Origin: Hyalangium minutum
GTDB lineage: Bacteria > Myxococcota > Myxococcia > Myxococcales > Myxococcaceae
DNA length: 64,000 bases
Assembly: GCF_000737315.1 (NCBI RefSeq)
Contig: NZ_JMCB01000006.1
Location: 186,001 to 250,000, forward strand
Direction: 5' to 3'
The notes below the pieces were generated by a model, which made no database searches, was not told where the DNA came from, and worked only from the letters and a program-made list of their open reading frames with translations. A program made the translations under genes and the position numbers. Below, piece by piece: positions 20,446 to 45,153 of this stretch. Numbering within the stretch: the first letter of the stretch is position 1; each line of letters begins with the position of its first letter.

Positions 20446-20695
20446 GTCGCACCCGGGTTTTACTCAAGGGAGCAAGCGCGCTGGCTTCTTCCTCGGGGGC
20501 CGCCCTCTGAGCATTTCAGTGAAATCGTGGTAACGGAGCGGCGTTGAACTTCAAAACGCTTTAGAGTATCAACCATCCGCATCCGAGAGTTTCCCCCTTC
20601 CGGGGGACCGTGCCAGGCCGGGGCCAGCCGCATCCGCGGACTTGAGGGGCGTCACGAGGGCGGGACTCAGCCCGCAGCCTCGAAGGAACCTACAT

Positions 20696-22010
<1,315 letters not shown>

Positions 22011-22027
<17 letters not shown>

Positions 22028-22943
22028 CGCCAAGACCGGGTCGAAGACGTTCACGTGGCTCGTCACCCTCGCGGCGGCGGGCCACCTCGTCTTCGTCACC
22101 GCGATGGGGAGGCTGCGGTGGGAGCACGCCGCGGCCGACCTGTTGCTTGCGGGGCTGGCTTGGGCCGGCCCCGCGCCGCGGCGTTTTCTCCAAGGCGGCT
22201 TCCCGCTGTGGCTCACCGGCATGCTGCTGGACAACCAGTGGCTGTGGCTGGGCCTGCGCGGCCGCGTCCACACCGGGGACTTGTGGGAGCTGGAGCGTGT
22301 GCTCTTCCCGTGCCCGGACGGCACCACCTGGCCTGCGTACTTCGCCACGCGCACCCACGCGGTGCTCGATTTCTTCTGCGGCTTCTCCTACGCGGCCTAC
22401 CTCTACGAAGTCTTCGGACTGGCGCTGTTGTTCTTCTTCCGCAAGCACCCGCGCTTCGCGACCATGTGCTGGGCCTTCTGCCTGCTGAACGCCATGGGCG
22501 TGGTGACGTACATGCTCTACCCCGCGGCGCCTCCCTGGTACGTGATGGCGTACGGCCCCGGTCCCGCGGACCTCACGGCTCCACCGAGCCCCGCCGGCAC
22601 CGCGCGCTTCGACGCGCTGATGGGCATCAGCTACTTCGCGAAGTTCTACGCCCGCAACCCCAATGTCTTCGGGGCCATGCCCTCGCTGCACGCCGCCTAC
22701 CCGACCCTGGTCGTCTGGCAGTCGTGGGGGTTGGGCCGGAGCTGGCGCGTGGGCACCATTGCATTCGCCGCACTGGTGGCGTTCTCCGCCATCTACCTGC
22801 AACACCACTACATCTTGGACGTCGTGGCGGGAGTGGTTGCCGCTCTGGCCGCCTGCTGGATTGTTGAGTACGCCCTCGTCCGGCGTGAATCTCCAGCTTC
22901 CGCGACCGTCCCCGTCATGCCTGGAGGCGACAGCCGTGCTTGA
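22011..22943 (+). CDS. Aur1-like inositol phosphorylceramide synthase (PAP2_3 superfamily)
   Basis: YPAAPPWY, NVFGAMPSLHAAY and QHHYILD match the Aur1/LPT catalytic domains; multi-pass membrane protein; start overlaps the ino1 3' end by 17 nt. Confidence 0.85.
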
Positions 22944-24177
22944 AACCCTGATGGCCTGGATCATGGGAGACCTCTCCCCTTCCGCGCGAATCTGGACGGC
23001 GCTCGGCCCGGCGCTGCTCGCGTGTGCCTACTTCATCCTGGGGCTCGTGGCGTTCTGCGTGCGCGTGGCCATCAAGGGCGTGCCGCAGGATGAGGAGACG
23101 CTCAAGCGCGGCAGCACCATCCTGGTGGGCATGTTCCTGCGCCACTACTTCTTCTGGGTCACCCAGCCCCTGTGGAAAGTGATTTACCGCTCGGGGCTGC
23201 CGGCCAACGCGCTGTCCATGCTGTCGGGCCTGCTGGGCGTGTCCTCGGGCGTGGCGGTGGCGGCGGGGCGCTTCACGCTGGGCGGCTGGCTCTTCCTGGC
23301 CTCCGGCATTCTGGACGTGATGGACGGGCGCATCGCCCGCATCCGCAAGCAGGCCAACCCGGCCGGCGCGGCGCTGGACTCGGTGCTGGACCGGTACGTG
23401 GACTCGGCCATGCTGATGGGCCTGGCCTGGTACTACCGGGACAACTGGGTGCTGCTGCCGGTGCTGGTGGCGTTCCTGGGCACCTCGCTGGTGCCGTACG
23501 TGCGCGCCCGCGGCGAGGGCCTGGGCATCAACATCCGCGGCGGCGCCATGCAGCGCCTGGAGCGGGTGCTCTTCCTGGGCGTGGGCGTGGCGCTGGCGCC
23601 CATCTTCGAGGCCATCTGGTTCCCCGAGCAGAAGCACCCCATGCACTGGCTGGCGGTGGTGGGCATCGTCTTCGTGGCCATCATGAGCAACGTGACGGCG
23701 TTCTCGCGGTTCCGGGCGCTCGTCAACGCGCTGGCGCCGCCTCCTCCTACGAGCCGCAAGCGCTCGGGGCTGGCAATCCTGGGCCTCAACGCGCTGGCGG
23801 GCGCGGTGGCCACGGGCGTGGACTTCGTGTCCGTGCTGGGAATGGTGGAGAAGCTGAGCTTCACGCCCGTCATCGCCACGGCGCTGGGGTGCGTGCTGGG
23901 TGGGGTGGTGAACTACTCGATGAACCGGCTGCTGACATTCCGCAGCCAGAGCGCGGTGGCGCCGCAGCTTGCCCGTTATACGTTGGTGAGCGCGACAAGC
24001 GCGCTGCTCAACGCGGGGGGTGTGGCGTTGCTCACGCTGCACCCGCAATTGGCGTACACGCTGGGATGGTGGTTGGCTCGAGGGGCGGTGTACTTCGCGT
24101 GGAACCTCCCCCTCCAGCGGGACTACGTCTTCAATGACCCGCCGGAGGCGCTCATGGAGCGCCCTCATGCGGCATGA
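22936..24177 (+). CDS. CDP-alcohol phosphatidyltransferase (probable PIP/PI synthase) fused to a GtrA-like domain
   Basis: Signature DVMDGRIAR..GAALDSVLDRY; C-terminal four-helix GtrA pattern ATGVDF..GGVVNYSMNRLLTF..LARY; GGAGG RBS then GTG overlapping the upstream stop. Confidence 0.9.
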   Translation: MLETLMAWIMGDLSPSARIWTALGPALLACAYFILGLVAFCVRVAIKGVPQDEETLKRGSTILVGMFLRHYFFWVTQPLWKVIYRSGLPANALSMLSGLLGVSSGVAVAAGRFTLGGWLFLASGILDVMDGRIARIRKQANPAGAALDSVLDRYVDSAMLMGLAWYYRDNWVLLPVLVAFLGTSLVPYVRARGEGLGINIRGGAMQRLERVLFLGVGVALAPIFEAIWFPEQKHPMHWLAVVGIVFVAIMSNVTAFSRFRALVNALAPPPPTSRKRSGLAILGLNALAGAVATGVDFVSVLGMVEKLSFTPVIATALGCVLGGVVNYSMNRLLTFRSQSAVAPQLARYTLVSATSALLNAGGVALLTLHPQLAYTLGWWLARGAVYFAWNLPLQRDYVFNDPPEALMERPHAA

Positions 24178-25150
24178 CAAACTGTCTCTGCTAAGCCTGC
24201 TGGCCGTGCTCGCCCTGCCCTCGCTGGCGGGCGCGAGCGCCGTGCTGGAGCCGCTGCCCTCCTCGAACGACAACTACGGGGAGAGCTTCACCTTCATGGT
24301 GGACCTGGAGGACGGCACCTTCGTCTTCACCCAGTTCTCCATCACCAACCTGGGGCCGGGCTCGCGCCACGGCATCTGCCGGGCCACGGTGGTGCGCCCG
24401 GGGCAGAAGACTTGGTCGCCTCAGGTGAAGGTGAGCTCGGACGAGTGGGGCTACGACGCGGCCACCTCCACGCTGAAGATGGGGCCCTGCACGCTGCACG
24501 CTGGCACGGGCACTTTCCTGTCGCTGCCGCTGGACAACGGGCTGGTGAACATCACCTTCAGTGATCCGCCCTCGCCCAAGTCTCCTCCGGGCTCGGAGGT
24601 GGTAGTAGGCACCACGCGCTACCGCCACGAGGTGCTGCTGCCCTTCAGCGCGGCGAAGGTGGGTCTGCGGCTGCCGGGCTCCAACGCGCTGCTGGAGCTG
24701 TCCGGCGTGGGCTATGCGGACCACTCGCACTCCACGGTGGCTCCGGCGAAGCTGGCGCGCAGCTGGGTGCGCTTCCGGGCGCTGCGCTCGGGCGGCTCCA
24801 ACCTGCTGCTGCTGGCGCGCGAGGGCTTCGACGGAGGCTTCACCCCGGCCTACGTGTGGCCCGCGGGCGGTGAGCCGCAGGTGCTGCAGCGCTTCGAGCT
24901 GCGCCGCCAGCCGGGTGACTCGAAGAAGGCGGGCTGGGAGGCGGACCTGAGCGGCGCGGGGGGTGCGCTCTCACTGAAGGCCACCTCGCTGATGCTGCGC
25001 ACCGCGCCGGTGCAGGACCTGGGAATCTTGGGCAGCCTGGTGCGGCCGGTGGTGGGCTCGCCGGTGACATACCTCATGCGGGCGGTGCTGCAGCGCCCGG
25101 GGCAGCCAGACGTGCACGGGCTGATGGAAGTCACGCTGGATGAGGGGTGA
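24167..25150 (+). CDS. Secreted beta-rich protein resembling the Svf1/AttH double-lipocalin family
   Basis: Signal peptide (MRHDKLSLLSLLAVLALPSLAGA); ESFTFMVDLEDGTFVFTQF..TN, YRHEVLLP, PAKLARSW, VGSPVTY and HGLMEVT blocks follow the order I recall for yeast Svf1. Confidence 0.6.
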   Translation: MRHDKLSLLSLLAVLALPSLAGASAVLEPLPSSNDNYGESFTFMVDLEDGTFVFTQFSITNLGPGSRHGICRATVVRPGQKTWSPQVKVSSDEWGYDAATSTLKMGPCTLHAGTGTFLSLPLDNGLVNITFSDPPSPKSPPGSEVVVGTTRYRHEVLLPFSAAKVGLRLPGSNALLELSGVGYADHSHSTVAPAKLARSWVRFRALRSGGSNLLLLAREGFDGGFTPAYVWPAGGEPQVLQRFELRRQPGDSKKAGWEADLSGAGGALSLKATSLMLRTAPVQDLGILGSLVRPVVGSPVTYLMRAVLQRPGQPDVHGLMEVTLDEG

Positions 25151-25186
25151 GGAGAGGGGTATGGCGTCGGCGGACAGAGGTGCGCC

Positions 25187-25804
25187 GTGAACGTCTCGTT
25201 GCTACGAGAAGTGCACCACGTGCCGGGCGTGCGAGGGTGGGTGCGCAAGCAGGTGCTGCGCTCGGTGGCGCGCGTGGTGGAGTGGACGACGAAGCTCCCA
25301 GGGCGTGGAATGAACGTCTCCCAGGTGAACGACTGGCTGTGGGTGGGCGGCTCGGTGTCCCGCTCGCAGTACGCGGCGCTGAAGGCCCAGGGCATCACCG
25401 CGGTCATTGATTTGCGCGCCGAGCGCGTGGACGACGCGGCGGCGCTGGCGGCGCTCGGCATCGAGCTGCTGCACCTGCCGGTGACGGACCGGTATCCGCC
25501 GTCCGTGGAGCAGCTGATGAAGGGTGTGGAGTGGGCGCTGCCGCGGCTGAAGGCGGGGGGCAAGCTCTACACGCATTGCGAGCATGGCGTGGGCCGAGGC
25601 CCGCTGATGGGGCTGGCGGTGCTGGTGGCGCAGGGGGCCGATGTGAAGGAGGCGTACCGCGCGCTGCGCGAGCGCCGCTGGCAGGCCACCCTGAACGACC
25701 GGCAACTGGGAGGGCTCGCGGACTTCACCGTGGCGTGGGAGGCGAGGAAAGCCCCGGAGCGCGTCTCCCTTCCCCCCGCCTCACCGGGAGCCACCGGTAC
25801 CTGA
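25187..25804 (+). CDS. CX5R dual-specificity/lipid phosphatase (probable PIP or PIP-ceramide phosphatase)
   Basis: HCEHGVGRG active-site loop, GITAVIDLR, LPVTDRYPPS general-acid loop. Confidence 0.88.
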   Translation: MNVSLLREVHHVPGVRGWVRKQVLRSVARVVEWTTKLPGRGMNVSQVNDWLWVGGSVSRSQYAALKAQGITAVIDLRAERVDDAAALAALGIELLHLPVTDRYPPSVEQLMKGVEWALPRLKAGGKLYTHCEHGVGRGPLMGLAVLVAQGADVKEAYRALRERRWQATLNDRQLGGLADFTVAWEARKAPERVSLPPASPGATGT

Positions 25805-25873
25805 CAGAGACATTCCCCCCCGCATAAAGGTCTGGCTGCGGTCTGAGAGTTCCCTGCTAAAGAGGTCGTGCGT

Positions 25874-26554
25874 ATGAGCCGTTCCTACCTCCGCCATCAA
25901 TCCGGCCGCATGTTCGAGAACAACTTTCTCGAGGCCTGCTCGAGAGTGCACCCATCGGTGCCGTTCCTCTTCTACATCCCGCTGACGCTGGGCTTGTATG
26001 CCTGGTCTCTCTACGGGGGAAAGACGACGCTGGGGTACAGCGCGCTGTTCGTGCCGCTGGGCGTGCTGACGTGGCTTGGCATGGAGTACAGCCTCCACCG
26101 CTACTTCTTCCACTGGGAGGGCAACGGTCCGTTCACGCGGCGGGTGCATGAGATTACCCACGGCTACCACCACAAGTACCCGGACGACGCGGACCGGCTG
26201 GTGATGCCGCTGGGCGCGAGCATCCCGCTGGCCATCGTGATTGGCGGACTGCTGTGGCTGGTGGGCCAGCCGGTGGCGACGATTCCGTACTTCCTGGGCA
26301 TCGTCTGGGGCTACCTGGTGTACGACTTCCTCCACTGGTCCACGCACCACCGCACGCCGCGCACGGCGTGGGGCAAGGCGCTGCGCGCGCACCACATGGC
26401 GCACCACTTCGCCACGCCGGATCGCAACTTCGGCATCAGCAACATGTGGGTGGACATCCTGGTGGGCAGCGGTGGCCGCCGCCCCAAGCGGACCGAGCAG
26501 CCGGAGCAGCCGGAGGGCCAGCGCCCCGAGGTGACCTCCGGCGTGACGGAGTAG
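25874..26554 (+). CDS. Scs7/FA2H-like fatty acid (sphingolipid) alpha-hydroxylase without a cytochrome b5 domain
   Basis: His boxes EYSLHRYFFH, HGYHHKYP, YDFLHWSTH, HHMAHH; RLVMP; SRVHP start motif. Confidence 0.9.
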   Translation: MSRSYLRHQSGRMFENNFLEACSRVHPSVPFLFYIPLTLGLYAWSLYGGKTTLGYSALFVPLGVLTWLGMEYSLHRYFFHWEGNGPFTRRVHEITHGYHHKYPDDADRLVMPLGASIPLAIVIGGLLWLVGQPVATIPYFLGIVWGYLVYDFLHWSTHHRTPRTAWGKALRAHHMAHHFATPDRNFGISNMWVDILVGSGGRRPKRTEQPEQPEGQRPEVTSGVTE

Positions 26555-26677
26555 CCGAGTTACTGCGTCTCCTTCCCGGCGCGAAGAGGCACCCGAGCCG
26601 CTATACTCGGCTCGGCGGCCGGGCCTGATTCCAACATCCGTTCTCTCGGGGAGGACGGTCTCGAATCAGGGGTTTCG

Positions 26678-27526
26678 ATGAGACACCTCTTCGCGGTGCG
26701 CTCCTTTCTCTCCGCTCTCGCCTGCGCGCTCCTGTGCTCCTGCGTGACCTCCCGTGGCGCCGCGCCCGAGGAGGAGGACGAGGGTGCGCTGGGGTCCTTC
26801 CTGGACTCAGGAGCCTCGGGCCTCGTGTGCGATGGAACGCGGCTGGTAGGGGCCACCTCCTTCTCGCAGACGTGCCTGCCGACGGGGAAGAGCCCTGGCC
26901 CCACCGTGTCCGGCCTTGAGCCACTGTCCGCGCCGCTGCGCGAGTGCGTGCTCACGAGCCTCCCGGTGGAGACCGGCGGCGGCACCTCCCCCGAGTGCTT
27001 GAAGGGCGCGGCACAGGTGCTCCAAGGCCGACTGCGCCAGCTGGGCTGGCTGGAGGCCGAGGTCCTCCCCGCGACGGGCCGGCCGGACGTGTCCGAGGCC
27101 CAGCTGCAGGCCCAGCTCCGGAGCCGCTACCGGGTGGGCGTGATGCGGGTGGAGCACAGCGAGGAGCCCGGCGTCGTGGATCCGGAGAAGATCCTCGTGA
27201 AGGCGCGCGCGGCGGTGCCCGAGGGCTCCTGGTACACCTCGGGTGCCCTGGCGGAGATCCACGCCCGCGTCTTTCAGATGAAGAAGTTCCGCTCGGTCTG
27301 GGTGTACGGCGGCGAGCCGGATTACCGGAACAAGATCATCCCGGTGATCATCGACGTCTGGGAGAAGCCCCAGAAGCCGCGCAAGGTGAAGATGGCCCGG
27401 CCCGAGCGCCCGAGGCCGCGGGACAACTGCCCGAGACGCGACGCCATCTGCCTCAACGGGCAGGACTGCTCCTACGACACGGAGCACCGCTGCACCGTCT
27501 GCTTCTGCCGGCCCACCTTCCGCTGA
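26678..27526 (+). CDS. Lipoprotein with a POTRA-like domain and a Cys-rich tail
   Basis: Lipobox LCSC; RYRVG..GSWYTSGALAEIHARVFQMKKFRSV..IPVIIDVWE resembles POTRA; six Cys in the last 32 aa. Confidence 0.7.
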   Translation: MRHLFAVRSFLSALACALLCSCVTSRGAAPEEEDEGALGSFLDSGASGLVCDGTRLVGATSFSQTCLPTGKSPGPTVSGLEPLSAPLRECVLTSLPVETGGGTSPECLKGAAQVLQGRLRQLGWLEAEVLPATGRPDVSEAQLQAQLRSRYRVGVMRVEHSEEPGVVDPEKILVKARAAVPEGSWYTSGALAEIHARVFQMKKFRSVWVYGGEPDYRNKIIPVIIDVWEKPQKPRKVKMARPERPRPRDNCPRRDAICLNGQDCSYDTEHRCTVCFCRPTFR

Positions 27527-31809: not shown

Positions 31810-33507
31810 ATGCGTTTCTTCTCCGCCTCCCTGCTCTCTGTGCTCGTCGCGGGCACTGTCTCCGCCGCGCCCGCGGTCTGGACTGAAGGCCCGCTCCTCA
31901 AAGTGGGTCCCTCGACACCGGCCCAGAACCTCGCGCCCGCTCGCCTCTTGGCGGCTCGCAACGAGTTCGAGTCCTTCCAGATCGTCATCCGCGGGGAGGC
32001 CCCCGTCTCCGGCGTTCGCGCGAAGGTCGGCGAACTGACTGGCCCCCATGGCGCGAAGATCCCTCAGTCGAATGTGCGCCTCTACCGCGAGGCGCTCATC
32101 AACGTCACCACGCCATCGGGCGCGATCGGCGCCAAGGGGCGCTTTCCGGATGGCCTCATCCCAGATGTGGACGAGGTGGACGGCCAGATGCGCTCCGCTT
32201 TCCCCTTCGATATTCCCGCGGGTGAGGCGCACGCCCTCTGGGTGGATGTCCTCGTGCCCCTGGATGCACCGGCCGGCCTCTACACCGGCACCCTCCAGGT
32301 CTCCGCGGACGGGCTCGACACCCAGGTCCCCGTGGAGCTCGAGGTCCTCGGCTTCACCCTGCCCTCCACCCCAACGCTCTCGACGGCCTTCCGCGCCTGG
32401 CCCGCGTTCGTCTGCCTCGCTCACACGGGCACGGCCGACTGCGGGAGCCCCGAGACGGCCATCGAGCTGCTCTCGAAGTACGCGCGGCTTGCGCTCGATC
32501 ACCGCATCTCGCTCTCGAACCTCTTCGTCCTGCGCCGCGATCCCCAAGACACCGGAGTGGTGCTCGGCAAGAACGGCGAGGACTGGTCGGGCTTCGATAC
32601 GGCTTTCAGCCCGCTCCTGAACGGCACCGCGGCGACACAGCTCACCGGCGCGAAGCTCACCGCTGTCGAGTATGGCTGGGAACTCTCCCCCGAGGCGCTC
32701 GCGTCCTATGGCCAGCACGCCCGTGACAAGGGCTTTTTGGACCGCGTCTTCGACTACACCGCCGACGAGCCTCCTTATGGAAGCAAGTGGGAGGACATCG
32801 CGCCCCGGTCCGCCATCGTCCACGCCGCCGTCCCGGACATGCGCACGCTCGTCACCACGAACGTCAACGCCGCCACCGACAACAAGCTCGCGGACAGCCT
32901 CGACATCCTCGTGCCCGTCGTGAACCACATGGATGCACCCTTCGCCCCGTTCGCCGGCAATCAGCGGCCTCGCTACGAGGACTTCACCCGCCGGGGCGGA
33001 GAGCTCTGGCTGTACCAGAGCTGCATGAGCCACGGCTGCTCGTTCGGCGGCGCGGAGGAGGGCGCGTCCTGGCCGAGCTACATGGTCGATGTCTCCGCGC
33101 CTCGCAACCGCGCCATGCAGTGGGTCGACTTCGCGTACGGCGCGACGGGCGAGCTCTATTACGAGACCGTGCTCGCCTATGACCGTGACCCGTGGGCGGA
33201 CCAGTTCACCTTCAGCGGCAACGGCGATGGCACGCTGCTCTACCCCGGCAAGCCTTCGAAGATCGGCGGCAGCTCCGAGGTCCCCGTGCCCTCGCTGCGG
33301 CTCAAGCACATCCGCGACGGCATCGAGGACTACGAGTACCTGACCCTGCTGGCGAAGCTGGGGGACCGGGCGCTCGCGGAGAAGCTCGCGCGAGAGGTCG
33401 TCCCCACGGCCCACCGCATCAGCGAGAACCCGAACGTCATCCTCGAGGCGCGCCGCACCGCAGGCCGCCGGATCGCGGAGCTCAGCGCCCAGGCCGCTCC
33501 GGGCTGA
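31810..33507 (+). CDS. Secreted DUF4091/GH123-like glycoside hydrolase
   Basis: Signal peptide; AARNEFESFQ, ADEP, GNGDGTLLYPG, SLRLKHIRDGIEDYEYL. Confidence 0.85.
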   Translation: MRFFSASLLSVLVAGTVSAAPAVWTEGPLLKVGPSTPAQNLAPARLLAARNEFESFQIVIRGEAPVSGVRAKVGELTGPHGAKIPQSNVRLYREALINVTTPSGAIGAKGRFPDGLIPDVDEVDGQMRSAFPFDIPAGEAHALWVDVLVPLDAPAGLYTGTLQVSADGLDTQVPVELEVLGFTLPSTPTLSTAFRAWPAFVCLAHTGTADCGSPETAIELLSKYARLALDHRISLSNLFVLRRDPQDTGVVLGKNGEDWSGFDTAFSPLLNGTAATQLTGAKLTAVEYGWELSPEALASYGQHARDKGFLDRVFDYTADEPPYGSKWEDIAPRSAIVHAAVPDMRTLVTTNVNAATDNKLADSLDILVPVVNHMDAPFAPFAGNQRPRYEDFTRRGGELWLYQSCMSHGCSFGGAEEGASWPSYMVDVSAPRNRAMQWVDFAYGATGELYYETVLAYDRDPWADQFTFSGNGDGTLLYPGKPSKIGGSSEVPVPSLRLKHIRDGIEDYEYLTLLAKLGDRALAEKLAREVVPTAHRISENPNVILEARRTAGRRIAELSAQAAPG

Positions 33508-33632
33508 GGCCCGGACCTCATCTCGGCGGACTCAGCAGGGCATGGACGTGAATGTCTTCACCCGCGGTGCGAATCGGCACCTCTGGCAGAACGGATCCTT
33601 GTGTATCCTCGGGTCCTCTTCCGGAGCCTCCG

Positions 33633-36600
33633 ATGCCCACCACCCTTCGTCACTCCTTCTGTACCCTGACGTATGACTCCACCCACCGGCGCGAGGGCTT
33701 CGCGGACTGGGTGGTAGGCAATGCGTTCGCCTTCCACGCGGGCCAGGGTCCGGGGCCGCAGGTGCTCTTTCTCGGGAGCCCGGGCACGCTCGGCCAGGCG
33801 AGCAACCCGGTGAAGATCCAGCCGGAGGGGCTCGGCTTTCCTCCGCTCGTCGCGGTGATCACCGACAAGATGCTGTACCGCGAGGGCGACGACACCGTGC
33901 GCATCGTGGTGTACGCGCCCCGAGCCAGCGGCGCGGTGCAGCTCCGGCTCCTGCTCAACGGCTCGGAGCTGGCGAAGGTCCAGGTGGACGTGGACGAGAA
34001 CGGCCTGGGCCTGTTCGAGCTGAGGGATCCTGTCGCGGGCTCCTACTCCGTGGAGCAGGAAGCGGCGAAGGCCTCGTTCACCGTCGCGGCCTACAAGCTG
34101 GCGCCCCTCACCGGGCGGCTGGATCAGGTGCGCATCGAGGGCGGCAAGGGCGCGGAGACGCTGCACTTCACCGCGGTGCTGGAGACCTATGGAGCACCGC
34201 TCACGGGCTCGGTGAAGGTGACCCTCGTCGACATGGGCAGCCACCCGCCGGTTCATCGGACGTCTCTCACGCTGGAGGCCGATTCCGCCGGACGGCTCGA
34301 GGGCTCGGTCGCGCTCTCGGGTGCGGGCCCTTTCGCGCTGCAGGTGCAGGCCACGCGGGATGCGATGAAGACGGCCACCCTGCCCCTCCCCGGCTCGCGC
34401 CAGGAGGAGCGCGAGGAGGTGGTGCTCTCCGCGTGGGGCACTCGCACCGTGGCGCGCTTGGTGCCCTTCGAGGGCGCGCATGAGCGGCGAGGGCTGTGGA
34501 TCGGCTCCGGCGGCGAGAGCAAGGGCGCGCCCCTTCAGCTCGTGGAGGAGAACGGCAAGGCGCGGGTGCGCTTCCGGGCGGACATCGATGCGTGGCGCAT
34601 CGTCGTGATGGATGTGCACCGGGGCTCGGTCCAGGAGCTGTCCGGCGGGGCCACCGAGGCGGGCACTTCGCTGGATCTCCCCCTGGCCGGAACGTGGACG
34701 CTGGTGCTCGCAGGGCTCGCCTATCTGGGCCAGCGCTGGGAGGGCCGGGCCGCGCTCGTGGTCCCCGGCAAGCAGGTCCAGGTGCAGGCCCCGAAGACCG
34801 CGGGCCCGGGTGAAGAGGTGGACATCACCCTCCGAGGCACTCCGGGCGCCAGCGCCTTCGTGCTCGTCAAGGATCTGCGGCTGCAGGTGGCGGACACGCC
34901 TCAGTCCGCGACCGCCGCCTCCCTGCGCCGGCAGCTCGAGCATGCGCTCAAGGGCGTCAGCGATGGTCCAGTTCAGCGGACCCTCGATGCGCTGATCCCG
35001 CATCCTCCCCCACCGATGCCTCCCATGATGCCGGCCATGCCGATGATGGCCGTGCCCGCCCCCGCCCCCGGAGGTGCAGTGGTCCGGCGAGCTGGCGGCA
35101 TGCCACCCTCTCGGGCGCTGAGGGAAGAGAGGGCCACCGGCTCTCACCAAGCCCTCAGCAAGCAGGGAGGAGCCCCCGCGGCGGAAGCCGCCGCACCGGA
35201 CGAGAAGCCCGCGGAGGGACCCTCTCGGAGCTCATTCCCGGACGTGATGCTGGCGCGCGTCGTGCGGCTGGATGCGGAGGGCAAGGCAATCGTCCCGGTG
35301 AAGCTCGGCGACGGCATGGGCTCGCTGGCCGTGGAGGTCTTCTCGGTGACGCGCGAGGACTGGGCGGTGGCCCGCGCGGAGTTGCTGGTGACGAAGCCTG
35401 TCTTCGGAGAGCTGGTGCTGCCACGCTTCGTAGCGGCCGGAGACCACGCCGAGGGCGTGCTGCACGTCCGCGTGGCCTCAGGCGAGGCCACCGTCACCCT
35501 CCGGCGCGAGGGCAAGCCCGTGCGCCTGTTCTGCACCAATGAGAGCGGCGAGCAGCTGACCCTCACGGCACCAGGACAGGTGGTGCGCTTCGCCGCTCAG
35601 GCCGGCCGCTACCAGGCCGAGGTCCGCGGCGAGTCGCTCGTGGATCGCGCCGAGGGCAAGGTGGAGGAGCCCGGCAAGCTGGTCTGGCTGCAGCAGGCGC
35701 TGCGGATGCTGTCACCCGGCGAGCGCGTGGACCTGGAGCAGGAGCCGGGAGGCCTGGCGCTCAAGGTGCTGCCCTCGATCGACAAGACCTTCGATCGGAT
35801 GGTGGGCGGCCTTCGCTCTTACGCGCACTGCTGCTGTGAGCAGACGAGCGCCGTGCTGCTGGCGGCCACTGCCGCGTGGCTGACGGCGAAGGATGAGGAC
35901 ACGAAGCGCTCGGCGGCGGCGCACATGCGCGCGTGCATCGCCCGCGAGGAGTCCATGTACCTGCCGGGCAAGGGCTTCAAGGGCTGGCCCGAGTATCCGC
36001 CCGAGGTGTTCACGTACTCGCCCGGCGCCACGCTCAACCTGCTGCAGATGGACATGGTGAAGGCGTTCCCCATGGACAAGGAGCTGGCGAAGTCCGTGGA
36101 CCGCTGCCTGGAGATGGCCCGGGATGCGGCGAAGGCCCACGGGATTGATCCGGCCCCGCCGTCGCCCAAGTCCGCCCGGGAGGCCTACGGCCGCTTCTCG
36201 AAGTTCACCCAGGACCGCGAGAAGATGGCCGCCTTCATCCGCGAGCGCATCGAGCCGTGGGAGAAGCAGCTCAAGGCCATCCTCAAGTTCGAGTTGCCGG
36301 CCCTGCGCACGGAGAGCTACCACCACACCCCGGCGATGATCCGGGCGGAGACGGCCTTCGGGGCGGCGGCGCTGATCGAGGCCGGCGGAGAGCACCTGCC
36401 TCACGGACTCGCCCTGGCCAACACCGTTCTGGGGGCAGTCCAGGAGAACGGCAGCCTCTACTCCACGCTGGACTCGGTGGCGGCCATCACGCTGCTGGCG
36501 GCGCTGCGCAATGCCCGCATCGCCGTCGGGCCCGAGGGGAAGATCCGCGTGGATGGGCAGGACACGACGCTGGCCCAGGCAGTGACTCGCACGGGGCTCC

Positions 36601-37094
36601 GCCAGGTGGAGGCCGTGGAGGGCAGCGTGCAGGTGCAGGTGGATCGCATCGTCGAGGAGGACTACACGGCGATCAACGAGGGCGTGAAGGCCCACGTCGC
36701 GCTGATGCGCAGCGGCCGCGCGGCGGGCGTGCTGGCGCCGGGAGACTCGGTGGACCTGGTCATCACGCTGGAGAGTGGGTACCAGGCGGGAGACCTCGTG
36801 CACGTGTTCCTGCCGGATGCACTCTCGTGGGTGCATGGAGGCGGACAGGTGAAGCGCTTCTCACTGGACCTCGTGGGCCAGAACGAGATCCGCGTCCCGC
36901 TGGCCGCCACGGGTTTGACGCTGGATGCCAGCGGAGGCCCCGGCCGCCAGCGCTTCGCGGTGGCCGTGCGCAACATGTACGACGAGAAGCGGGGCAAGGG
37001 CTTCGGAGACCTCGAGGTGTCCGTCCACAAGACCGCCGGGCCCGGTGGATTGGCCCAGCGCGTCCTGAAGGGGCTCAAGGACCTGGTCGGCTGA
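33633..37094 (+). CDS. Alpha-2-macroglobulin-like thioester protein with no recognisable signal peptide
   Basis: MG2 signature TDKMLYREGD, low-complexity bait-like segment, RSSFPDV, VTKPVFGELVLPRFVAAGD, thioester YAHCCCEQTS; about 1153 aa. Confidence 0.85.
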   Translation: MPTTLRHSFCTLTYDSTHRREGFADWVVGNAFAFHAGQGPGPQVLFLGSPGTLGQASNPVKIQPEGLGFPPLVAVITDKMLYREGDDTVRIVVYAPRASGAVQLRLLLNGSELAKVQVDVDENGLGLFELRDPVAGSYSVEQEAAKASFTVAAYKLAPLTGRLDQVRIEGGKGAETLHFTAVLETYGAPLTGSVKVTLVDMGSHPPVHRTSLTLEADSAGRLEGSVALSGAGPFALQVQATRDAMKTATLPLPGSRQEEREEVVLSAWGTRTVARLVPFEGAHERRGLWIGSGGESKGAPLQLVEENGKARVRFRADIDAWRIVVMDVHRGSVQELSGGATEAGTSLDLPLAGTWTLVLAGLAYLGQRWEGRAALVVPGKQVQVQAPKTAGPGEEVDITLRGTPGASAFVLVKDLRLQVADTPQSATAASLRRQLEHALKGVSDGPVQRTLDALIPHPPPPMPPMMPAMPMMAVPAPAPGGAVVRRAGGMPPSRALREERATGSHQALSKQGGAPAAEAAAPDEKPAEGPSRSSFPDVMLARVVRLDAEGKAIVPVKLGDGMGSLAVEVFSVTREDWAVARAELLVTKPVFGELVLPRFVAAGDHAEGVLHVRVASGEATVTLRREGKPVRLFCTNESGEQLTLTAPGQVVRFAAQAGRYQAEVRGESLVDRAEGKVEEPGKLVWLQQALRMLSPGERVDLEQEPGGLALKVLPSIDKTFDRMVGGLRSYAHCCCEQTSAVLLAATAAWLTAKDEDTKRSAAAHMRACIAREESMYLPGKGFKGWPEYPPEVFTYSPGATLNLLQMDMVKAFPMDKELAKSVDRCLEMARDAAKAHGIDPAPPSPKSAREAYGRFSKFTQDREKMAAFIRERIEPWEKQLKAILKFELPALRTESYHHTPAMIRAETAFGAAALIEAGGEHLPHGLALANTVLGAVQENGSLYSTLDSVAAITLLAALRNARIAVGPEGKIRVDGQDTTLAQAVTRTGLRQVEAVEGSVQVQVDRIVEEDYTAINEGVKAHVALMRSGRAAGVLAPGDSVDLVITLESGYQAGDLVHVFLPDALSWVHGGGQVKRFSLDLVGQNEIRVPLAATGLTLDASGGPGRQRFAVAVRNMYDEKRGKGFGDLEVSVHKTAGPGGLAQRVLKGLKDLVG

Positions 37095-37111
37095 CCTGAC
37101 ACCAACGCCTC

Positions 37112-38104
37112 GTGGACAACCTCACGCACGGATTGCTGGGCCTCGCGGTAGGCGCGCTGCGCCGGCCTGACGCCGCAGGAGGCCCTCTGTCCGCCACGGA
37201 CAAGGCCGTGCTGCTGGGGTGCGCGCTGGCCGCCGAGCTGCCGGATCTGGACAACCTGCTGCCCTCGGAGAACTCGGTGGTGCACGCGCTCCAGGCGCAC
37301 CGCGGGCTCTCGCACGCGCTGGTGTTCACCCCGGTGGTGGCGTTGGCCGCGACGGCGGTGGCGAAGGCGGTCTTCCGCACAGCGCGCGTGGGGCCGGTGT
37401 TCCTCTTCAGCCTGATCTCGGTCTGCCTGGCGCACCTGTTGGCGGACCTGTGGACAGGCTGGGGCACGCGCGTGCTGCTGCCCTTCTCGGATCGGCGGTG
37501 GACGCTGGACTGGACGATGGTGGTGGATCCGTGGGTGACGCTGCCACTGCTCGTGGGCGCGGTCTGGGCCTGGCGCCGCAGGACCGTGTGGCGGCGAGCA
37601 CTGCTCGTGGGAGCGGCGCTCTCGGTGGCGTACCTGGGGCTGCGCGTCGCACTTCAGAACGTGCTGAGCGGGCGTGTCCGAGAGGCCTTGCCCGCCGCGG
37701 AGCGAGTGCAGGTGTTCCCCGCGTGGCTGTCGCTCACGACCTGGCGCTACGTGGCCCTGCTGCCGGATGAGTACGTGGTTGGCACGGCCTCCCTGGGCAG
37801 AGCGCCCATCGAGGAGCGGAGGTGGCCCCGGCCCGTCCCTGACGCACTGCCGGAGTCCGTGAGGAACATCCCCACCGTGCGCGAGGCGCTCGCCTGGGCG
37901 CGCTTTCCCCTCGTTTCACAGGTTCCCCGCCCTGACGGAGCCTCCGAGATCCGCATCGGCGATCTGCGCTACCACCTGAACGGCGAGCCGACGCTCCAGT
38001 TCATTCTGGAGCTCAATCCGGAGGGAGCCCTGCGCGCCGCCCGCCTGGAGCGAGGCGGGAGCGCGGCGGAGTTGCTGCGGCGGTGGCGAGGCCAAGACCG
38101 CTGA
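37112..38104 (+). CDS. YdjM/DUF457-type membrane metal-dependent hydrolase
   Basis: MDNLTHGLLG, LPDLD, HRGLSHAL, HLLADLWTGWG, VVDP. Confidence 0.9.
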   Translation: MDNLTHGLLGLAVGALRRPDAAGGPLSATDKAVLLGCALAAELPDLDNLLPSENSVVHALQAHRGLSHALVFTPVVALAATAVAKAVFRTARVGPVFLFSLISVCLAHLLADLWTGWGTRVLLPFSDRRWTLDWTMVVDPWVTLPLLVGAVWAWRRRTVWRRALLVGAALSVAYLGLRVALQNVLSGRVREALPAAERVQVFPAWLSLTTWRYVALLPDEYVVGTASLGRAPIEERRWPRPVPDALPESVRNIPTVREALAWARFPLVSQVPRPDGASEIRIGDLRYHLNGEPTLQFILELNPEGALRAARLERGGSAAELLRRWRGQDR

Positions 38105-38143
38105 GCGATGCGCTCCGCTCAGACCTGAGGTACCGCTGGCGCC

Positions 38144-40615
38144 TCAGGCCTCCTTGGCCGGAGCGGTGGGGCCGTGCTTGCGCCGCCAGCGCTCCACCAG
38201 CAGCAGCAGCGAAGGGAAGCCCAGCAGCACGATGAGAATGTTCACGCCGAACCCCAGGTTCGCCACGTTGCCGATCGAGTTGAGCCCCGGGTGCTGAGCA
38301 ATGGCCAACGCCAGGAAGCCGATGGCGCTCGTCAGCAGACCGCCCGTGATGGCCCGGCCCGTCTCCGCGTACACGGAGATGAAGTCACTGTCCGGCTCGG
38401 ACAACCGTTGGATGAGGTGCACGCCCGCGTCCACTGTCGTGCCCACCAGCACCGGCAGCACCACCAGGTTCAGGTAGTTGAACTGAATGCCCAGGATGGC
38501 CATCAGCCCCACCAGCCCCGCCACCGACAACAGCGTGGGCAACATGCAGATCAGCGCCGTGCGCAGCTTGCCCAACGTCACCCACATGGCCACCAGCACC
38601 GAGAGCACCGCCGCCGCCAGAATGCGCGGCCCCTCCTGCGCCACCATGTCCAGGATGTCCGCCACGATCAGCGCCTCGCCCGCCGCCGACACCTGCGAGC
38701 CGTCCGGCAGCTTCATCCCGCGCACCTCCTTGGTGAAGCGCCGCGTCCCGTAGCCATCCGCCAGGTTGATGGATGCGTACACCAGCACCACGCCGCTCCG
38801 GTTCCCATCCAGCCCCTCCAGCTCGTGCCGCATCGCCTCGGGCAGGTCCTTCTGACCGAAGGTCTGCGCCTGCGTCATCTTCAGGTACGTGGGCCAGTGA
38901 GCCTGCACGTCCTTGGGCAGCCGCTCCGGATCCAGCTTCGCCAGCTTGTCGTGGATGGCGTGCAGGACCGCCGCCTTCTCCTCCTGCTTGTCCGGCACCA
39001 GGTCCTCCTGCGAGCGGACGAAGTCGATGGTGGAGTCCTTGCCCTTCTGCGCCTTGCGCTCCTTGAGCTGGCGCACCACCTCGCGCTCCATCGTCGGCGA
39101 GTCCGTGACGACCACCACCGGAGACTGCGAGTGGCCCAGAATCTTGTCCATGCGCCGGTCCAGCCGCACGGACGGCAGCTCCATCGACTCCAGCTTGGAG
39201 CCGTCGTAGTTGAAGCTGACGTTCCACGCCTGGCTGATCAGCGCCACCAGCCCCACGCCCACCACGATGGCCACTCCGCGGTAGCTGCGCGGCAGCCACC
39301 GGGCCAGCATGGCCATCGGACCGGCCGAGCCCACGTGCTCGCGCGGCGTCCAGCCCCACTTCGCCGCCAGCCCCAGCAGCGCCGGGAGGATGAGCACGTA
39401 CGAGGCGATGCTCACCAGCATGCCCACCGCCGCGATGATGCCGAACTCGTGGAACGCGGCGAACTCGGAGATGGACAGGCTCAGGAACGTGAGCGCCGCC
39501 ACCACCGCGGAGATGAGCGCGGAGAAGCCCGTGTGACTGAAGGCCTCGCGCACCGCCTCCAGCGAGTCCTTCCCCTCCGAGCGCAGCGTCGTGTACCGCC
39601 CCAGGAGGTGGATGCCGTGCTCCACGCCCAGGCCGCCCAGCACCGCGCCCAGGAAGCCGGTGAGCAGGTTCACCTGCCCGTAGAACAGGCCCACGAAGCC
39701 GTATGTCCACGCCAGGCCTCCCAGCACCGGCAGCACCGCGAAGGCCACGCTCAGCACGCTGCGGAAGTGGAACCCCAGGTAGAGCAGCAGCAGCACCAGC
39801 GCGATGCTCGAGGCCTGCGCCAAGTCGTTGGTGATCAGCGCCTGGTGGTCAATCTTCTTCTTGAAGGTGCCCGACAAGGCCGTCTGGAAGCCGGGCCCAT
39901 ACTTGGACAAGTCCTGCTGCTTCAGGAACTCGTCCACTTGGGACACCACCTTCTTGGCGTAGCCCAGGTCGGCGCTGTTGCCCTTCGGCTTGAGCATCAG
40001 CACCACCATCTTCTCCTCCGGATCCAGGTAGTACGGATCCTTCGCCACCGCCTGCTCCTCGCTGCCGCGGCGCAGGAAGAGCTTCTGTTCCAGCTTGTGC
40101 TTGAAGTCCTCGAAGCCAATGGAGGGCGGAGGCGCATCCTCCAGCTCGACGAAGAGCGGGTTGGCCCGCTGCTTCTCCCAGGTGATGCGATCGTCGAGCT
40201 GCTTCTGGAGCCCTTGCAGGTCCTCCAGCTCCGCGTAGTACAGCACGCGCTCCTCGAAGAAGGCGTCCGAGCGCTTGTAGTTGACGTAGCGGACCTCGGA
40301 GAGCTGGCCCAGCTTGGGAGCCATGTCGTCGGCGAACTGCTTGAGCTTGTCAGCGTCCGCGTTCATGCCCACGACGACCAGGTAGCCCTGCCCGCCGAAG
40401 CGCTTCTTCAGCTTCTCCAGGTCCTGCACGCTGGGGAAGGACTTGGGCAGCAAGCCCACCAGGTCAGAGCTCAGGGAGAGCTTCCGCGCGAAGAAGCCGC
40501 CCACCACCACCAACAACGCCGCCAGGGCCAGCGCCTGCCAGGGCTTGCGATGGTTGCGCGCCGCCAGCGCGCCCATCAACTTCTCCATCCGCTGCCCCAA
40601 CCCGATCTCGCTCAT
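38144..40615 (-). CDS. MMPL/RND family lipid transporter (HpnN-like), copy 1
   Basis: Two repeats of TM1 + large periplasmic loop + five TMs; GLGVEHGIHLLGRY and GTTVDAGVHL motifs. Confidence 0.92.
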   Translation of the reverse strand: MSEIGLGQRMEKLMGALAARNHRKPWQALALAALLVVVGGFFARKLSLSSDLVGLLPKSFPSVQDLEKLKKRFGGQGYLVVVGMNADADKLKQFADDMAPKLGQLSEVRYVNYKRSDAFFEERVLYYAELEDLQGLQKQLDDRITWEKQRANPLFVELEDAPPPSIGFEDFKHKLEQKLFLRRGSEEQAVAKDPYYLDPEEKMVVLMLKPKGNSADLGYAKKVVSQVDEFLKQQDLSKYGPGFQTALSGTFKKKIDHQALITNDLAQASSIALVLLLLYLGFHFRSVLSVAFAVLPVLGGLAWTYGFVGLFYGQVNLLTGFLGAVLGGLGVEHGIHLLGRYTTLRSEGKDSLEAVREAFSHTGFSALISAVVAALTFLSLSISEFAAFHEFGIIAAVGMLVSIASYVLILPALLGLAAKWGWTPREHVGSAGPMAMLARWLPRSYRGVAIVVGVGLVALISQAWNVSFNYDGSKLESMELPSVRLDRRMDKILGHSQSPVVVVTDSPTMEREVVRQLKERKAQKGKDSTIDFVRSQEDLVPDKQEEKAAVLHAIHDKLAKLDPERLPKDVQAHWPTYLKMTQAQTFGQKDLPEAMRHELEGLDGNRSGVVLVYASINLADGYGTRRFTKEVRGMKLPDGSQVSAAGEALIVADILDMVAQEGPRILAAAVLSVLVAMWVTLGKLRTALICMLPTLLSVAGLVGLMAILGIQFNYLNLVVLPVLVGTTVDAGVHLIQRLSEPDSDFISVYAETGRAITGGLLTSAIGFLALAIAQHPGLNSIGNVANLGFGVNILIVLLGFPSLLLLVERWRRKHGPTAPAKEA

Positions 40616-42633: not shown

Positions 42634-45153
42634 ATGGCTTCGGATCCGACAACGCCCGCCGGCTGGCGGGGACGTCTTGAGCAGCGCCTCGGCGGGCTGG
42701 CGGACTACAACTACCGCCACCCCTGGCTAGCGCTCGCCATTGCCCTGGCGCTGAGCGTGCTGGGGGTCTTCTTCGCGCGGGGACTGTCGCTTGATGCGAA
42801 CCTGGTGAGCCTGCTTCCCCAGTCCTTCCAGAGCGTGAAGGATCTGCAGGAGCTGGAGGAGCGCTTCGGCGGGCTCGGGTGGGTGGCCGTGGTAGGCGAG
42901 GGGGCGGACCCCGAAGCCCTGCGCCGCTTCGCGGACGATCTGGCGCCCCAGCTGGAGGCCTTGCCTGACATCCGCTTCGTGGAGTCGAAGCGCCCCGGGC
43001 CCTTCCTCCAGGAGCACGCGCTCTACTTCCTCTCCTTGGAGGATCTGCTGCAGGTGGAGCAGCGCATCGACGCGCGCCTCACGTACGAGAAGCAGCGCGC
43101 CAACCCGCTCTATGTCCCGCTGGTGGACGAGCCCGTGCCCTCGCTGGACTTCTCGGACCTGGAGGCGAAGTACGGCGCGGGCAGCGTGCGCAGGCTCTCG
43201 GGCCCCACGGGGGGAGAATACTATCTGGATCCGGTGGCGCGCCGTGTGGTGCTGCTGGCCAAGCCCGAGGGCATCTCCGCGGACCTGGACTTCTCCAAGC
43301 GCGTCGTCGGCGAGGTGGAGAAGCTGCTGGCCGCGCAGGACCTGTCCAAGTACGGGCCGGACTTCCACACGGCCATCACTGGTACCTTCCAGAAGAAGCT
43401 GGATCAACAGAAGCAGATCGGCCGGGACATCGCGGTGTCCTCGGCGGTGGCGGGCGTGCTGCTGCTGATCTACCTGCTGCTGCACTTCCGCAGCGCGCTC
43501 GCGGTGGCGGTGGTGCTGGCGCCGGTAGGCATGGGCCTGGCGTGGACGTACGGGCTGGTGGGCGTGGCGTACGGGCGGGTGAACCTGCTCACGGGCTTCC
43601 TGGGCGCCATCCTCGGAGGTCTCGGCATCGAGCACGGCATCCACCTGCTGGGGCGCTACCTCTATCTGCGCGGCCAGAAGTGGCAGGCGGAGGCGGCCAC
43701 GCGCGAGGCCTTCACGCACACGGGCAGCGCGGCGCTCACCTCGGCGCTCGTGGCGGCGCTCACCTTCTTCCTGCTGGGCACCTCGCACTTCCGCGCGTTC
43801 CGTGAGTTCGGCGTCATCGCCGGCTTCGGCATGCTGCTCATGGTGCTGGCCTACGTGCTGGTGCTGCCCGCGGTGCTGGGGCTGGCAGCGAAGCTGGGCT
43901 GGAAGCCCGGCCCGGGCGCCACGAAACACCAGCGCTCTCCGCTGGGCCGCCTGCTGGTGCGGCTGCACCGCCCCCTCACCGTGGTGTCGATGGTGGTCAT
44001 CGCCCTGCTGGTGGCGAACGTGGGCCGCGTGCGCTTCAACTACAACTTCGGCTCGCTGGCGGATCAGCACCTGCCCTCCTTCGTGCTGGACCGGCAGGTG
44101 ACGCAGCTGATTGGCTACTCGCAGTCTCCTCTGGTGATGCTGCCCCACAGCCCGGCGGAGGAGAGTGCCGTGGTGGAGGAACTGCACGCGAACCAGGCCC
44201 GTCTGGGCGAGCACTCCACGGTGGACTTCATCGCCTCGCTGGACACGCTGGTGCCGCGGGACCAGGTGAAGAAGCAGGAAGTGCTCCGCCGCCTCCAGAC
44301 CCTGCTGGAAGATGTGCCCGAGGGGCAGCTCGACGCCCAGCAACGCGAGCAGCTCGCGGAGCTGCGCCAGGCGACGCGGGCCGAGCCCTTCACCCTCGAG
44401 CAACTGCCTGCCTCCATGCGCCGGCCCTTCACGGACCTGAGCGGCCAGAGCCACTTCGTGCTGGTGTACCCGCGGGTGAGCCTGGATGACGGGCAGGGCA
44501 TCCGCGCCCTGGCCCGCGAGCTGCGCCAGGTGAAGACGCCCAGCGGCGGGCCCGTCGCCGTGGCGGGCGAGCCCATGGTGCTCGCGGACATCCTCAACAT
44601 GGTCACGCGCGAGTCGCCGTTCATTCTCATCGGCTCGCTGGTGGCGGTGCTGCTGGCCATGTGGGTGACTTTGGGGAGCCTGCGCCTGGCGCTGCTGTGC
44701 CTGACGCCCACCGTGGTGTCGCTGTTCGCGCTGGTGGGGCTGATGCCGCTGCTCAACGTGCAGTTCAACTACCTCAACATCCTCGTTATCCCCGTGCTCA
44801 TCGGGACGACCGTGGATGCGGGCGTCCACCTGCTCACGCAGCTCGTGTCACCGGAGAGCGACTTCGTCTCCGTCTACTCAGAGACGGGCCGCGCCATCAC
44901 GGGCGGTCTGCTGACGAGCGCCTTGGGCTTCGGCGCGCTCTTCCTCGCCGATCACCCGGGCCTCAACTCCATTGGCACGCTGGCCAACCTGGGCTTCGGC
45001 GTGAATCTGCTGGTGATGCTGGTGGCCTTCCCCGCGCTCCTGCTGCTGCTGTCCGAGCGGCGGCGGCGCAAGCGGCTCCAGCAGCAGGCCCATGCCCGGG
45101 ACGAGGCGCTCCCTCCCCCGGCCCGGCCGAGCGACGCTCCCTCGGCGAGCTGA
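42634..45153 (+). CDS. MMPL/RND family lipid transporter (HpnN-like), copy 2
   Basis: Same architecture as copy 1; shared QDLSKYGPxFxTAxxGTF, GLGIEHGIHLLGRY, GTTVDAGVHL and HPGLNSIG blocks. Confidence 0.92.
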   Translation: MASDPTTPAGWRGRLEQRLGGLADYNYRHPWLALAIALALSVLGVFFARGLSLDANLVSLLPQSFQSVKDLQELEERFGGLGWVAVVGEGADPEALRRFADDLAPQLEALPDIRFVESKRPGPFLQEHALYFLSLEDLLQVEQRIDARLTYEKQRANPLYVPLVDEPVPSLDFSDLEAKYGAGSVRRLSGPTGGEYYLDPVARRVVLLAKPEGISADLDFSKRVVGEVEKLLAAQDLSKYGPDFHTAITGTFQKKLDQQKQIGRDIAVSSAVAGVLLLIYLLLHFRSALAVAVVLAPVGMGLAWTYGLVGVAYGRVNLLTGFLGAILGGLGIEHGIHLLGRYLYLRGQKWQAEAATREAFTHTGSAALTSALVAALTFFLLGTSHFRAFREFGVIAGFGMLLMVLAYVLVLPAVLGLAAKLGWKPGPGATKHQRSPLGRLLVRLHRPLTVVSMVVIALLVANVGRVRFNYNFGSLADQHLPSFVLDRQVTQLIGYSQSPLVMLPHSPAEESAVVEELHANQARLGEHSTVDFIASLDTLVPRDQVKKQEVLRRLQTLLEDVPEGQLDAQQREQLAELRQATRAEPFTLEQLPASMRRPFTDLSGQSHFVLVYPRVSLDDGQGIRALARELRQVKTPSGGPVAVAGEPMVLADILNMVTRESPFILIGSLVAVLLAMWVTLGSLRLALLCLTPTVVSLFALVGLMPLLNVQFNYLNILVIPVLIGTTVDAGVHLLTQLVSPESDFVSVYSETGRAITGGLLTSALGFGALFLADHPGLNSIGTLANLGFGVNLLVMLVAFPALLLLLSERRRRKRLQQQAHARDEALPPPARPSDAPSAS

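Follow-up and report, generated by a model that had tools for sequence, protein, structure and literature searches.

A compact alpha-2-macroglobulin/TEP-like protein of Hyalangium minutum belongs to a signal-less bacterial family and may act as an intracellular covalent trap

The stretch of Hyalangium minutum DNA analyzed here (the window; 64,000 nucleotides, positions 186,001 to 250,000 of contig NZ_JMCB01000006.1) encodes, at 33633-37094 on the forward strand, a protein of 1153 residues that belongs to the superfamily of alpha-2-macroglobulin (A2M), TEP and complement C3. The characterised A2M, TEP and complement proteins all act outside the cytoplasm (PMC5764988, PMC3328433), and covalent capture by a thioester has so far been regarded as an extracellular or periplasmic strategy. 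On balance, we favour the view that the window protein is a member of a cytoplasmic clade of this superfamily and that it traps or tags its targets covalently inside the cell once cleavage or a signal has triggered it.

An AlphaFold2 (AF2) model of the window protein, built on 19 homologs, reached a mean predicted local distance difference test (pLDDT) score of 80.5 and a predicted template modelling (pTM) score of 0.71. It is composed of a run of beta-sandwich domains, a disordered segment (residues 465-528), an all-helical domain (residues 717-961), further beta domains and a final helix (residues 1140-1152). When this model was compared with the Protein Data Bank (PDB) by Foldseek, full-length matches were obtained to ECAM, A2ML1, human A2M, TEP1, Sa-A2M, CD109 and C3/C5, with E values of 3e-35 to 1e-28 and a probability of 1.0. 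As judged from the model, membership of the A2M/TEP/C3 superfamily is therefore secure. The features that accompany it are present: a chain of macroglobulin-like (MG) beta-sandwich domains, the Pfam A2M domain PF00207 after a flexible linker, and C-x-E-Q at the homologous site of the thioester domain (TED). PF00207 scored 24.4 bits, against a gathering cutoff of 21; RSSFP (residues 532-536) and LPRFVAAGD (residues 596-604) lie inside it and align with the MPRFLAGGD region of Sa-A2M and ECAM. DKMLYREG and FTVAAYKLAP correspond to MG2/MG3 signatures, and positions 32-204 of the family profile align with residues 61-245 of human A2M. At the sequence level the relationship is remote, the best PDB E value being 6e-6 for the single sequence (phmmer) and 1.5e-12 for the profile (human A2M), and none of the NCBIfam models matches the window protein. 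The initial annotation, made from the sequence by itself, had described the product as a compact member of the A2M superfamily that carries bait-like and thioester motifs. The fold, PF00207 and the Sa-A2M alignment agree with this description, and all the motifs that it listed (MG2, bait, RxxFP, LPRF..GD, CxEQ) are present. The features of the gene are as follows.

33633..37094, + strand: coding sequence of the cytoplasmic A2M/TEP-like thioester protein, 1153 residues plus stop
33633..33851, + strand: N-terminal beta domain, residues 1-73, with a conserved G29-x-x-F32-x-F34 and no signal peptide (AF2 strands, invariant columns, hydrophobicity scan)
33852..35012, + strand: MG-type beta-sandwich domains, residues 74-460, opening with DKMLYREGDDTVRIVV and FTVAAYKLAPL, the MG2 and MG3 signatures (profile alignment; pLDDT 85-95)
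35013..35225, + strand: bait-like region, residues 461-531, rich in Pro, Ala, Met and Gly, disordered and hypervariable (pLDDT, identity comparison)
35226..35732, + strand: A2M/MG7-type domain, residues 532-700, with RSSFP at 35226-35240 and LPRFVAAGD at 35418-35444 (PF00207; alignment with Sa-A2M and ECAM)
35772..36527, + strand: TED, an alpha/alpha toroid, residues 714-965 (10-11 AF2 helices; alignment with the Sa-A2M TED; Foldseek)
35820..35846, + strand: family signature Y730-A-H732-C-C734-C735-E736-Q737-T738 (Sa-A2M alignment, family conservation)
36528..37037, + strand: C-terminal beta domains, residues 966-1135, of CUB-remainder and MG8/receptor-binding-domain type, with invariant GGGQ-K and RNM-x-E (alignment, AF2, Foldseek)
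37038..37091, + strand: C-terminal amphipathic helix PGGLAQRVLKGLKDLVG, residues 1137-1153 (AF2 helix at residues 1140-1152)

The peptide YAHCCCEQTSA is encoded at 35820-35852, and phmmer places it on YPYGCLEQTT, the thioester site of Salmonella A2M (4u48). By homology, the predicted thioester pair consists of C734 (35832-35834, the middle cysteine of the CCC run) and Q737 (35841-35843), and in the all-helical domain of the model the CCEQ motif forms the start of the second helix. Y-x-H-x-C-C-E-Q-T is invariant in the 19-sequence alignment. In a wider set of 165 family proteins, CCEQ was found in 146 and C-x-E-Q with another residue at x in 8, the family consensus being Y-x-H-x-C-C-E-Q-T-[AS]. 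Since the glutamate, the glutamine and the threonine are invariant, it can be argued that thioester chemistry has been retained. The position before the reactive cysteine, C733, is occupied by A, G, L or C in relatives, and C735 is near-invariant and constitutes a hallmark of the family. The cysteine triplet, for which redox control had been suggested at first as a possibility, is therefore not a conserved feature, and this idea is not supported; what is conserved is the CC pair within C-C-E-Q. Because ECAM keeps its reactivity towards methylamine and proteases even when it is produced with the signal and lipoprotein sequence removed (PMC3328433), formation of a thioester in the cytoplasm is chemically plausible, and by analogy a Cys734-Gln737 bond would be feasible there.

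For the cellular location, a sequence scan of the window protein and of its in-frame upstream extension revealed no N-terminal hydrophobic core, lipobox or Tat motif, in line with the earlier statement that signal peptide and lipobox are lacking. The maximal Kyte-Doolittle value over 10 residues was 1.45, against 2.39 for the secreted GH123-like neighbour, which has an obvious signal peptide and served as control. No membrane helix was found in the window protein or its close relatives, and all first-round homologs (18/18) were devoid of a hydrophobic N-terminus, lipobox, Tat motif or membrane helix. A scan with one genome per species yielded 61 loci, 48 of them full-length, from Myxococcota, Longimicrobiales (Gemmatimonadota), Acidobacteriota, Obscuribacterales (Melainabacteria), Thiomargarita and other Thiotrichaceae, Gemmatales (Planctomycetota), Riflebacteria, Ca. 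Xenobia, Ca. Uabimicrobium and others, so that the family occurs in at least 8 phyla. None of the 48 full-length loci contained a signal-like segment ahead of the homology. Furthermore, most of them have an in-frame stop less than 30 codons upstream of the conserved N-terminus, which therefore leaves no room for a signal peptide, and 160 of the 196 members whose N-terminus is covered have at most 30 residues before the start of the profile. The survey for signal-less A2M clades that the initial annotation had proposed thus uncovered a large family of this kind.

The gene start was defined as follows. The open frame extends over 33552-37094, and the coding sequence begins at the ATG at 33633, which is preceded 6 nucleotides upstream by GGAG (33623-33626) and corresponds to the methionine at which close homologs begin. 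In orthologous loci, stop codons close the upstream frame 12-20 codons before this ATG, and the similarity that persists upstream of it is at the DNA level and non-coding. An earlier in-frame start carrying a signal was considered and excluded, since the extension has no hydrophobic core and the ortholog stops intervene.

The domains to which family members are fused lead to the same compartment. An exhaustive profile search collected 2380 proteins at E<=1e-3, and at E<=1e-30 the family comprises 405 clusters at 50% identity. Thirty members carry longer N-terminal extensions, in which FHA domains, MerR-type helix-turn-helix (HTH) domains, ankyrin repeats, zinc ribbons, a protein kinase domain and MshEN were recognized; the MerR-type HTH is present in 12 members, two of which also contain T5orf172/MUG113. 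A TPR insert separates MG domains in at least 69 members. MshEN stands at the start of P0104 and P0061, and a C-terminal extension of 150-370 residues in P0067 (E 6.6e-8), P0115, P0122, P0106 and P0143 is related to the N-terminal part of T2SSE ATPases; from these similarities, a link of such members to regulation by cyclic di-GMP (c-di-GMP) or of pilus-ATPase type is possible. The modules fused to family members all act in the cytoplasm. With no export signal across the family and intracellular fused modules, the cytoplasm is the only economical reading, extended by homology to the window protein. Its residence there, as the initial annotation had proposed, is well supported by these comparisons, which cover about 50 relatives in at least 8 phyla. 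The size of the protein was also revisited: at 1153 residues it has fewer MG domains than ECAM and is indeed compact, whereas as a family trait compactness describes only a sub-clade without the TPR insert that most members carry.

Some observations on the distribution of the family can be added. It is conspicuous in large, predatory and cell-biologically complex bacteria, an impression gained from the loci found. Examples are Ca. Uabimicrobium amorphum, a phagocytosis-like planctomycete (L069), the giant sulfur bacteria Thiomargarita/Thiotrichaceae (L054-L057, L060) and Obscuribacterales (L021-L049). Two MerR-HTH-fused members, P0153 and P0137 (the latter also with T5orf172), are encoded at L071 8001-11879 and L078 8001-12332, where many small unannotated open reading frames (ORFs) surround them and a metallophosphoesterase gene is common to both loci upstream; the product of a neighbouring gene in L071 resembles a major head protein of PHROG (E 1.8e-15). 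It is possible that P0153 and P0137 reside on a phage or prophage. No true viral relatives were found in two protein-guided scans and one motif scan of IMG/VR, six DNA motif matches being chance by hmmsearch, and a fold search of BFVD returned generic Ig-like repeat matches only. At NCBI, the Hyalangium rubrum homolog (73% identity) bears the label "alpha-2-macroglobulin family protein".

As in canonical A2Ms, the A2M domain starts with R-x-x-F-P directly after the bait-like segment, and the pLDDT of this segment falls below 50 across residues 465-528. It evolves fast: with respect to P0002 (89% identical overall), identity drops to 44% with 22% gaps in this segment and is 94-96% in the flanking domains, and with respect to P0006 the corresponding values are 23% and 74-88%. 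Rapid evolution and disorder are typical of A2M baits, yet any disordered linker would be expected to behave likewise. In P0087, P0088, P0093, P0120 and the homolog at L068, an FHA domain is inserted in this linker (at about residues 490-600 in each; Pfam E 1.8e-15 for P0088), which hints that the bait linker could be used for phospho-Thr recognition in addition to cleavage.

At the other end of the protein, the C-terminal helix stands out by its hydrophobic moment of 0.79 (99.9th percentile of the protein) and by 89-100% conservation in close orthologs. It is kept in the clade of the window protein and in a few other sub-clades. This helix may be a membrane- or partner-binding tail and may position the protein at the membrane's inner face.

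The flanking ORFs of about 65 loci were clustered in search of an operon partner. A conserved partner was rejected, as the YdjM, GH123, MMPL, aminotransferase and phosphodiesterase genes of the window never recur. Apart from order-level synteny, the clusters contained Ser/Thr kinases (15 loci) and histidine kinases (5 loci). The Ser/Thr kinase genes lie within 6 kb of the homolog, and in Obscuribacterales and Riflebacteria directly upstream on the same strand. Together with the FHA and kinase fusions, these neighbours provide a coherent lead, drawn from gene content, to Ser/Thr phospho-signalling. Families of penicillin-binding proteins were not recurrent among the neighbours. Around single homologs, the following arrangements were noticed: an FHA-fused homolog of a Haliangiales metagenome-assembled genome (MAG) located between Lon protease and Hsp70 genes on one strand (L004 5276-14071) and a C1-family peptidase gene that ends 30 nucleotides before the homolog of a Myxococcales MAG (L005 6385-7971), both possibly by chance; and, divergently upstream of P0005, a gene for a defence-type OLD-family nuclease (AAA_21 plus TOPRIM; L008 1383-3230), with LodA-like oxidase genes downstream.

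Taken together, these data would fit the following scheme. The resting protein would fold around a buried Cys734-Gln737 thioester. The trigger would act on the exposed, fast-evolving bait region, most likely through proteolytic cleavage; in relatives, docking of a phospho-Thr protein through the FHA domain may take this role. A conformational change would then expose the thioester, which would react with a nearby amine or hydroxyl and couple the protein covalently to the triggering protease or to another intracellular target. In relatives, the same module would be tied to Ser/Thr kinase and FHA signalling, to c-di-GMP (MshEN) or to DNA binding (MerR). In this scheme the architecture, the conserved motif and the cytoplasmic location come from the comparisons above, and it is the bond, the trigger and the target that we infer. 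An intracellular covalent trap, the function suggested in the initial annotation, is thus plausible. As to its target, phage or injected-effector proteases had been put forward, and the comparative data appear to favour Ser/Thr phospho-signalling at least as strongly.

Several points weigh against this scheme. The family is known from sequences and models, and AF2 is incapable of displaying a thioester bond. CxEQ is missing in 11 of the 165 members, and the invariant second cysteine and the histidine at -2 differ from the canonical GCGEQ/CLEQ and could mean another chemistry. The hypervariability of the bait could be the mere drift of a disordered linker, and the FHA domains within it suggest recognition instead of cleavage in some members. 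No protease gene is consistently adjacent; Lon, Hsp70 and a C1 peptidase were each met in one locus. Finally, the count of kinase neighbours is a raw one and partly reflects shared synteny within one order.

Among the alternatives, a complement-like tagging of a non-protease target is rather unlikely. The thioester would here be freed by signalling (phospho-Thr docking, kinase) or by contact with a foreign structure, and proteins of phages or other invaders, or a cellular substrate, would be marked for sequestration or degradation. The FHA domains at the N-terminus or in the bait region, the fused kinase and the neighbouring Ser/Thr kinases are all consistent with tagging, as are the presence of the family in conflict- and signalling-rich organisms (myxobacteria, Obscuribacterales, Thiomargarita, Ca. 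Uabimicrobium) and the phage-like contexts of some MerR-fused members. However, neither an FHA nor a kinase module is part of the window protein, its bait-like linker placed directly before the A2M domain is the classical cleavage-activated arrangement, and its locus lies amid lipid and carbohydrate metabolism genes and in no defence island; moreover, PADLOC-DB v2 gave no match for the window protein, YdjM, or the FHA-fused or MerR-fused relatives. It is also quite unlikely, in our opinion, that no thioester is formed and that H-x-C-C-E-Q has a redox or metal-sensing role, or that the protein works as a non-covalent scaffold or a cage of chaperone type, the fold acting only as a conformational switch. 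E736, Q737 and T738 are as invariant as the cysteines, a pattern that a thioester would predict and a simple metal site would not, and the motif occupies the homologous TED position. In favour of this reading, the family-specific vicinal cysteines and the histidine at -2 depart from GCGEQ and CLEQ, the type II A2Ms of bacteria capture proteases although they have no thioester (PMC5764988), and Lon and Hsp70 genes flank the homolog in single loci.

Myxobacteria shed many proteins in vesicles. Non-classical export (outer-membrane vesicles, type I or type VI secretion, lysis) would allow the protein to act outside the cytoplasm like the known bacterial A2Ms, the location of all characterised A2M/TEP proteins (PMC5764988, PMC3328433), and the conserved C-terminal helix could in principle serve as a secretion signal. 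This helix is missing in many members, however, and fusions to MerR HTH, FHA, kinase, MshEN and ankyrin domains in relatives are hard to square with export. Secretion-system genes are neither present in the window nor recurrent in the loci compared, no MYXO-CTERM or other NCBIfam model matches the protein, whose tail is an amphipathic helix without cysteine or hydrophobic span, and no PAAR/MIX-type domain was found in it. Export is thus very unlikely, and the early suggestion of a cargo for a non-Sec route finds no backing in these results.

Returning to the intracellular covalent trap, a wider conjecture, which we hold only tentatively and consider doubtful as a whole, is that the family represents a prokaryotic intracellular, complement-like surveillance module. 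Foreign proteases (from phages, injected effectors or prey) or kinase/FHA signalling would spring the thioester, the target would be bound covalently, and the fused relatives would relay the event to transcription (MerR), phospho-signalling or c-di-GMP. Within this conjecture, the family could also be the ancestral cytoplasmic form of the secreted bacterial A2Ms and of the animal TEP/complement proteins.

Upstream of the gene, the following block stands out.

33597..33628, + strand: conserved 5' block, with CCTTGTGTAT (33597-33606) and CCGGAGCC containing the GGAG ribosome-binding site (33623-33626) (ortholog comparison)

About 45 nucleotides directly before the start codon are near-invariant across four orthologous loci (73-97% protein identity), and the DNA further upstream is unalignable among them. 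From this conservation, the block may be a promoter -10, a promoter-proximal or a leader element. A promoter/terminator consensus scan of 33300-38300 (sigma-70 consensus) gave no match.

On its two sides, the A2M-like gene is flanked by the GH123-like gene and, after a gap of 17 nucleotides, by a YdjM gene that starts with GTG at 37112.

37112..38104, + strand: YdjM-family inner-membrane hydrolase (Pfam YdjM, E 2.9e-29), 17 nucleotides past the stop

The two genes are probably co-transcribed in the window. Of the earlier remark on YdjM, the adjacency is thus accurate, whereas partnership is contradicted by the absence of YdjM beside every homolog examined, including those of Hyalangium rubrum and the 81%-identical metagenomic P0005. 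As had been noted before, the gene has no pbpC or yfa partner, and no pbpC or mag/yfa gene is adjacent to it. The surroundings comprise genes for inositol-1-phosphate synthase, a CDP-alcohol phosphatidyltransferase, a fatty-acid hydroxylase, a PhoD phosphatase, a class V aminotransferase, the GH123-like protein, YdjM, two MMPL transporters, a phosphodiesterase and malic enzyme. The locus lies amid lipid and carbohydrate metabolism and envelope genes, and neither a secretion system nor a defence island was found in the window. Three of these genes, for myo-inositol-1-phosphate synthase, the CDP-alcohol phosphatidyltransferase (fused to a GtrA-type membrane domain) and the fatty-acid hydroxylase, form a cluster suggestive of inositol-lipid synthesis, close to the two MMPL/RND-type transporters, which flank the region of the A2M-like gene (20642-27526, 38144-40615, 42634-45153).

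That a broad family retains the thioester signature without any export signal, and carries FHA, kinase, MerR and MshEN fusions, implies that bacteria also trap or tag proteins covalently inside their cells, in connection with signalling. Such a widespread intracellular family would surprise specialists of A2M and complement. It bears on the origin of the TEP/complement lineage, given the profile match to human A2M, and potentially offers a small, monomeric thioester scaffold that can be expressed in the cytoplasm for protein engineering.

Among the known systems, the bacterial type I A2Ms (E. coli ECAM/YfhM, Salmonella Sa-A2M; PDB 5a42, 4ziq, 4rtd, 4u48) are periplasmic proteins that have a thioester and a lipoprotein signal and are encoded next to pbpC (PMC5764988, PMC3328433). 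The window protein has in common with them the A2M fold, a monomer-sized multi-MG architecture, a bait before the A2M domain with P-R-F..G-D, and C-x-E-Q-T at the homologous TED site. However, ECAM is a periplasm-anchored protein of 1653 residues with signal peptide and lipobox, and its gene is usually found beside pbpC (PMC3328433, PMC5764988). The window protein has 1153 residues (about 1650 residues and 13 domains in type I), fewer MG domains, no export signal, no pbpC neighbour, and H-x-C-C-E-Q instead of Y-G-C-L-E-Q. Sequence similarity to type I is marginal (phmmer E 6e-6), and the alignment with ECAM is limited to residues 540-800 against ECAM residues 930-1210. Type II proteins (P. aeruginosa MagD, E. 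coli YfaS) have the bacterial A2M fold and a bait region in common with it (PMC5764988). MagD, for its part, has no thioester, carries a signal peptide, belongs to a six-gene mag operon and is located at the periplasmic face of the inner membrane (PMC5764988), whereas the window protein has the thioester motif, no mag-like neighbours and no signal peptide.

The eukaryotic proteins (human A2M, A2ML1, CD109, insect TEP1, C3/C4/C5) have the same fold, domain order and thioester position, and the family profile matches human A2M, including its MG1-MG3 region (E 1.5e-12), at least as well as the bacterial periplasmic A2Ms. They are, however, secreted, glycosylated and disulfide-bonded, with GCGEQ, and many are oligomeric, while the window protein is intracellular by the comparisons above and one to two MG domains shorter, and its family carries FHA, kinase, MerR and TPR modules. 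No cytoplasmic A2M/TEP family of bacteria was described in the papers found by a full-text literature search. The window protein lacks the localisation and context features that define types I and II and has only those of the superfamily. The novelty lies in the cellular compartment and in the domain partners, whereas the fold is shared with the known proteins and the chemistry probably is as well.

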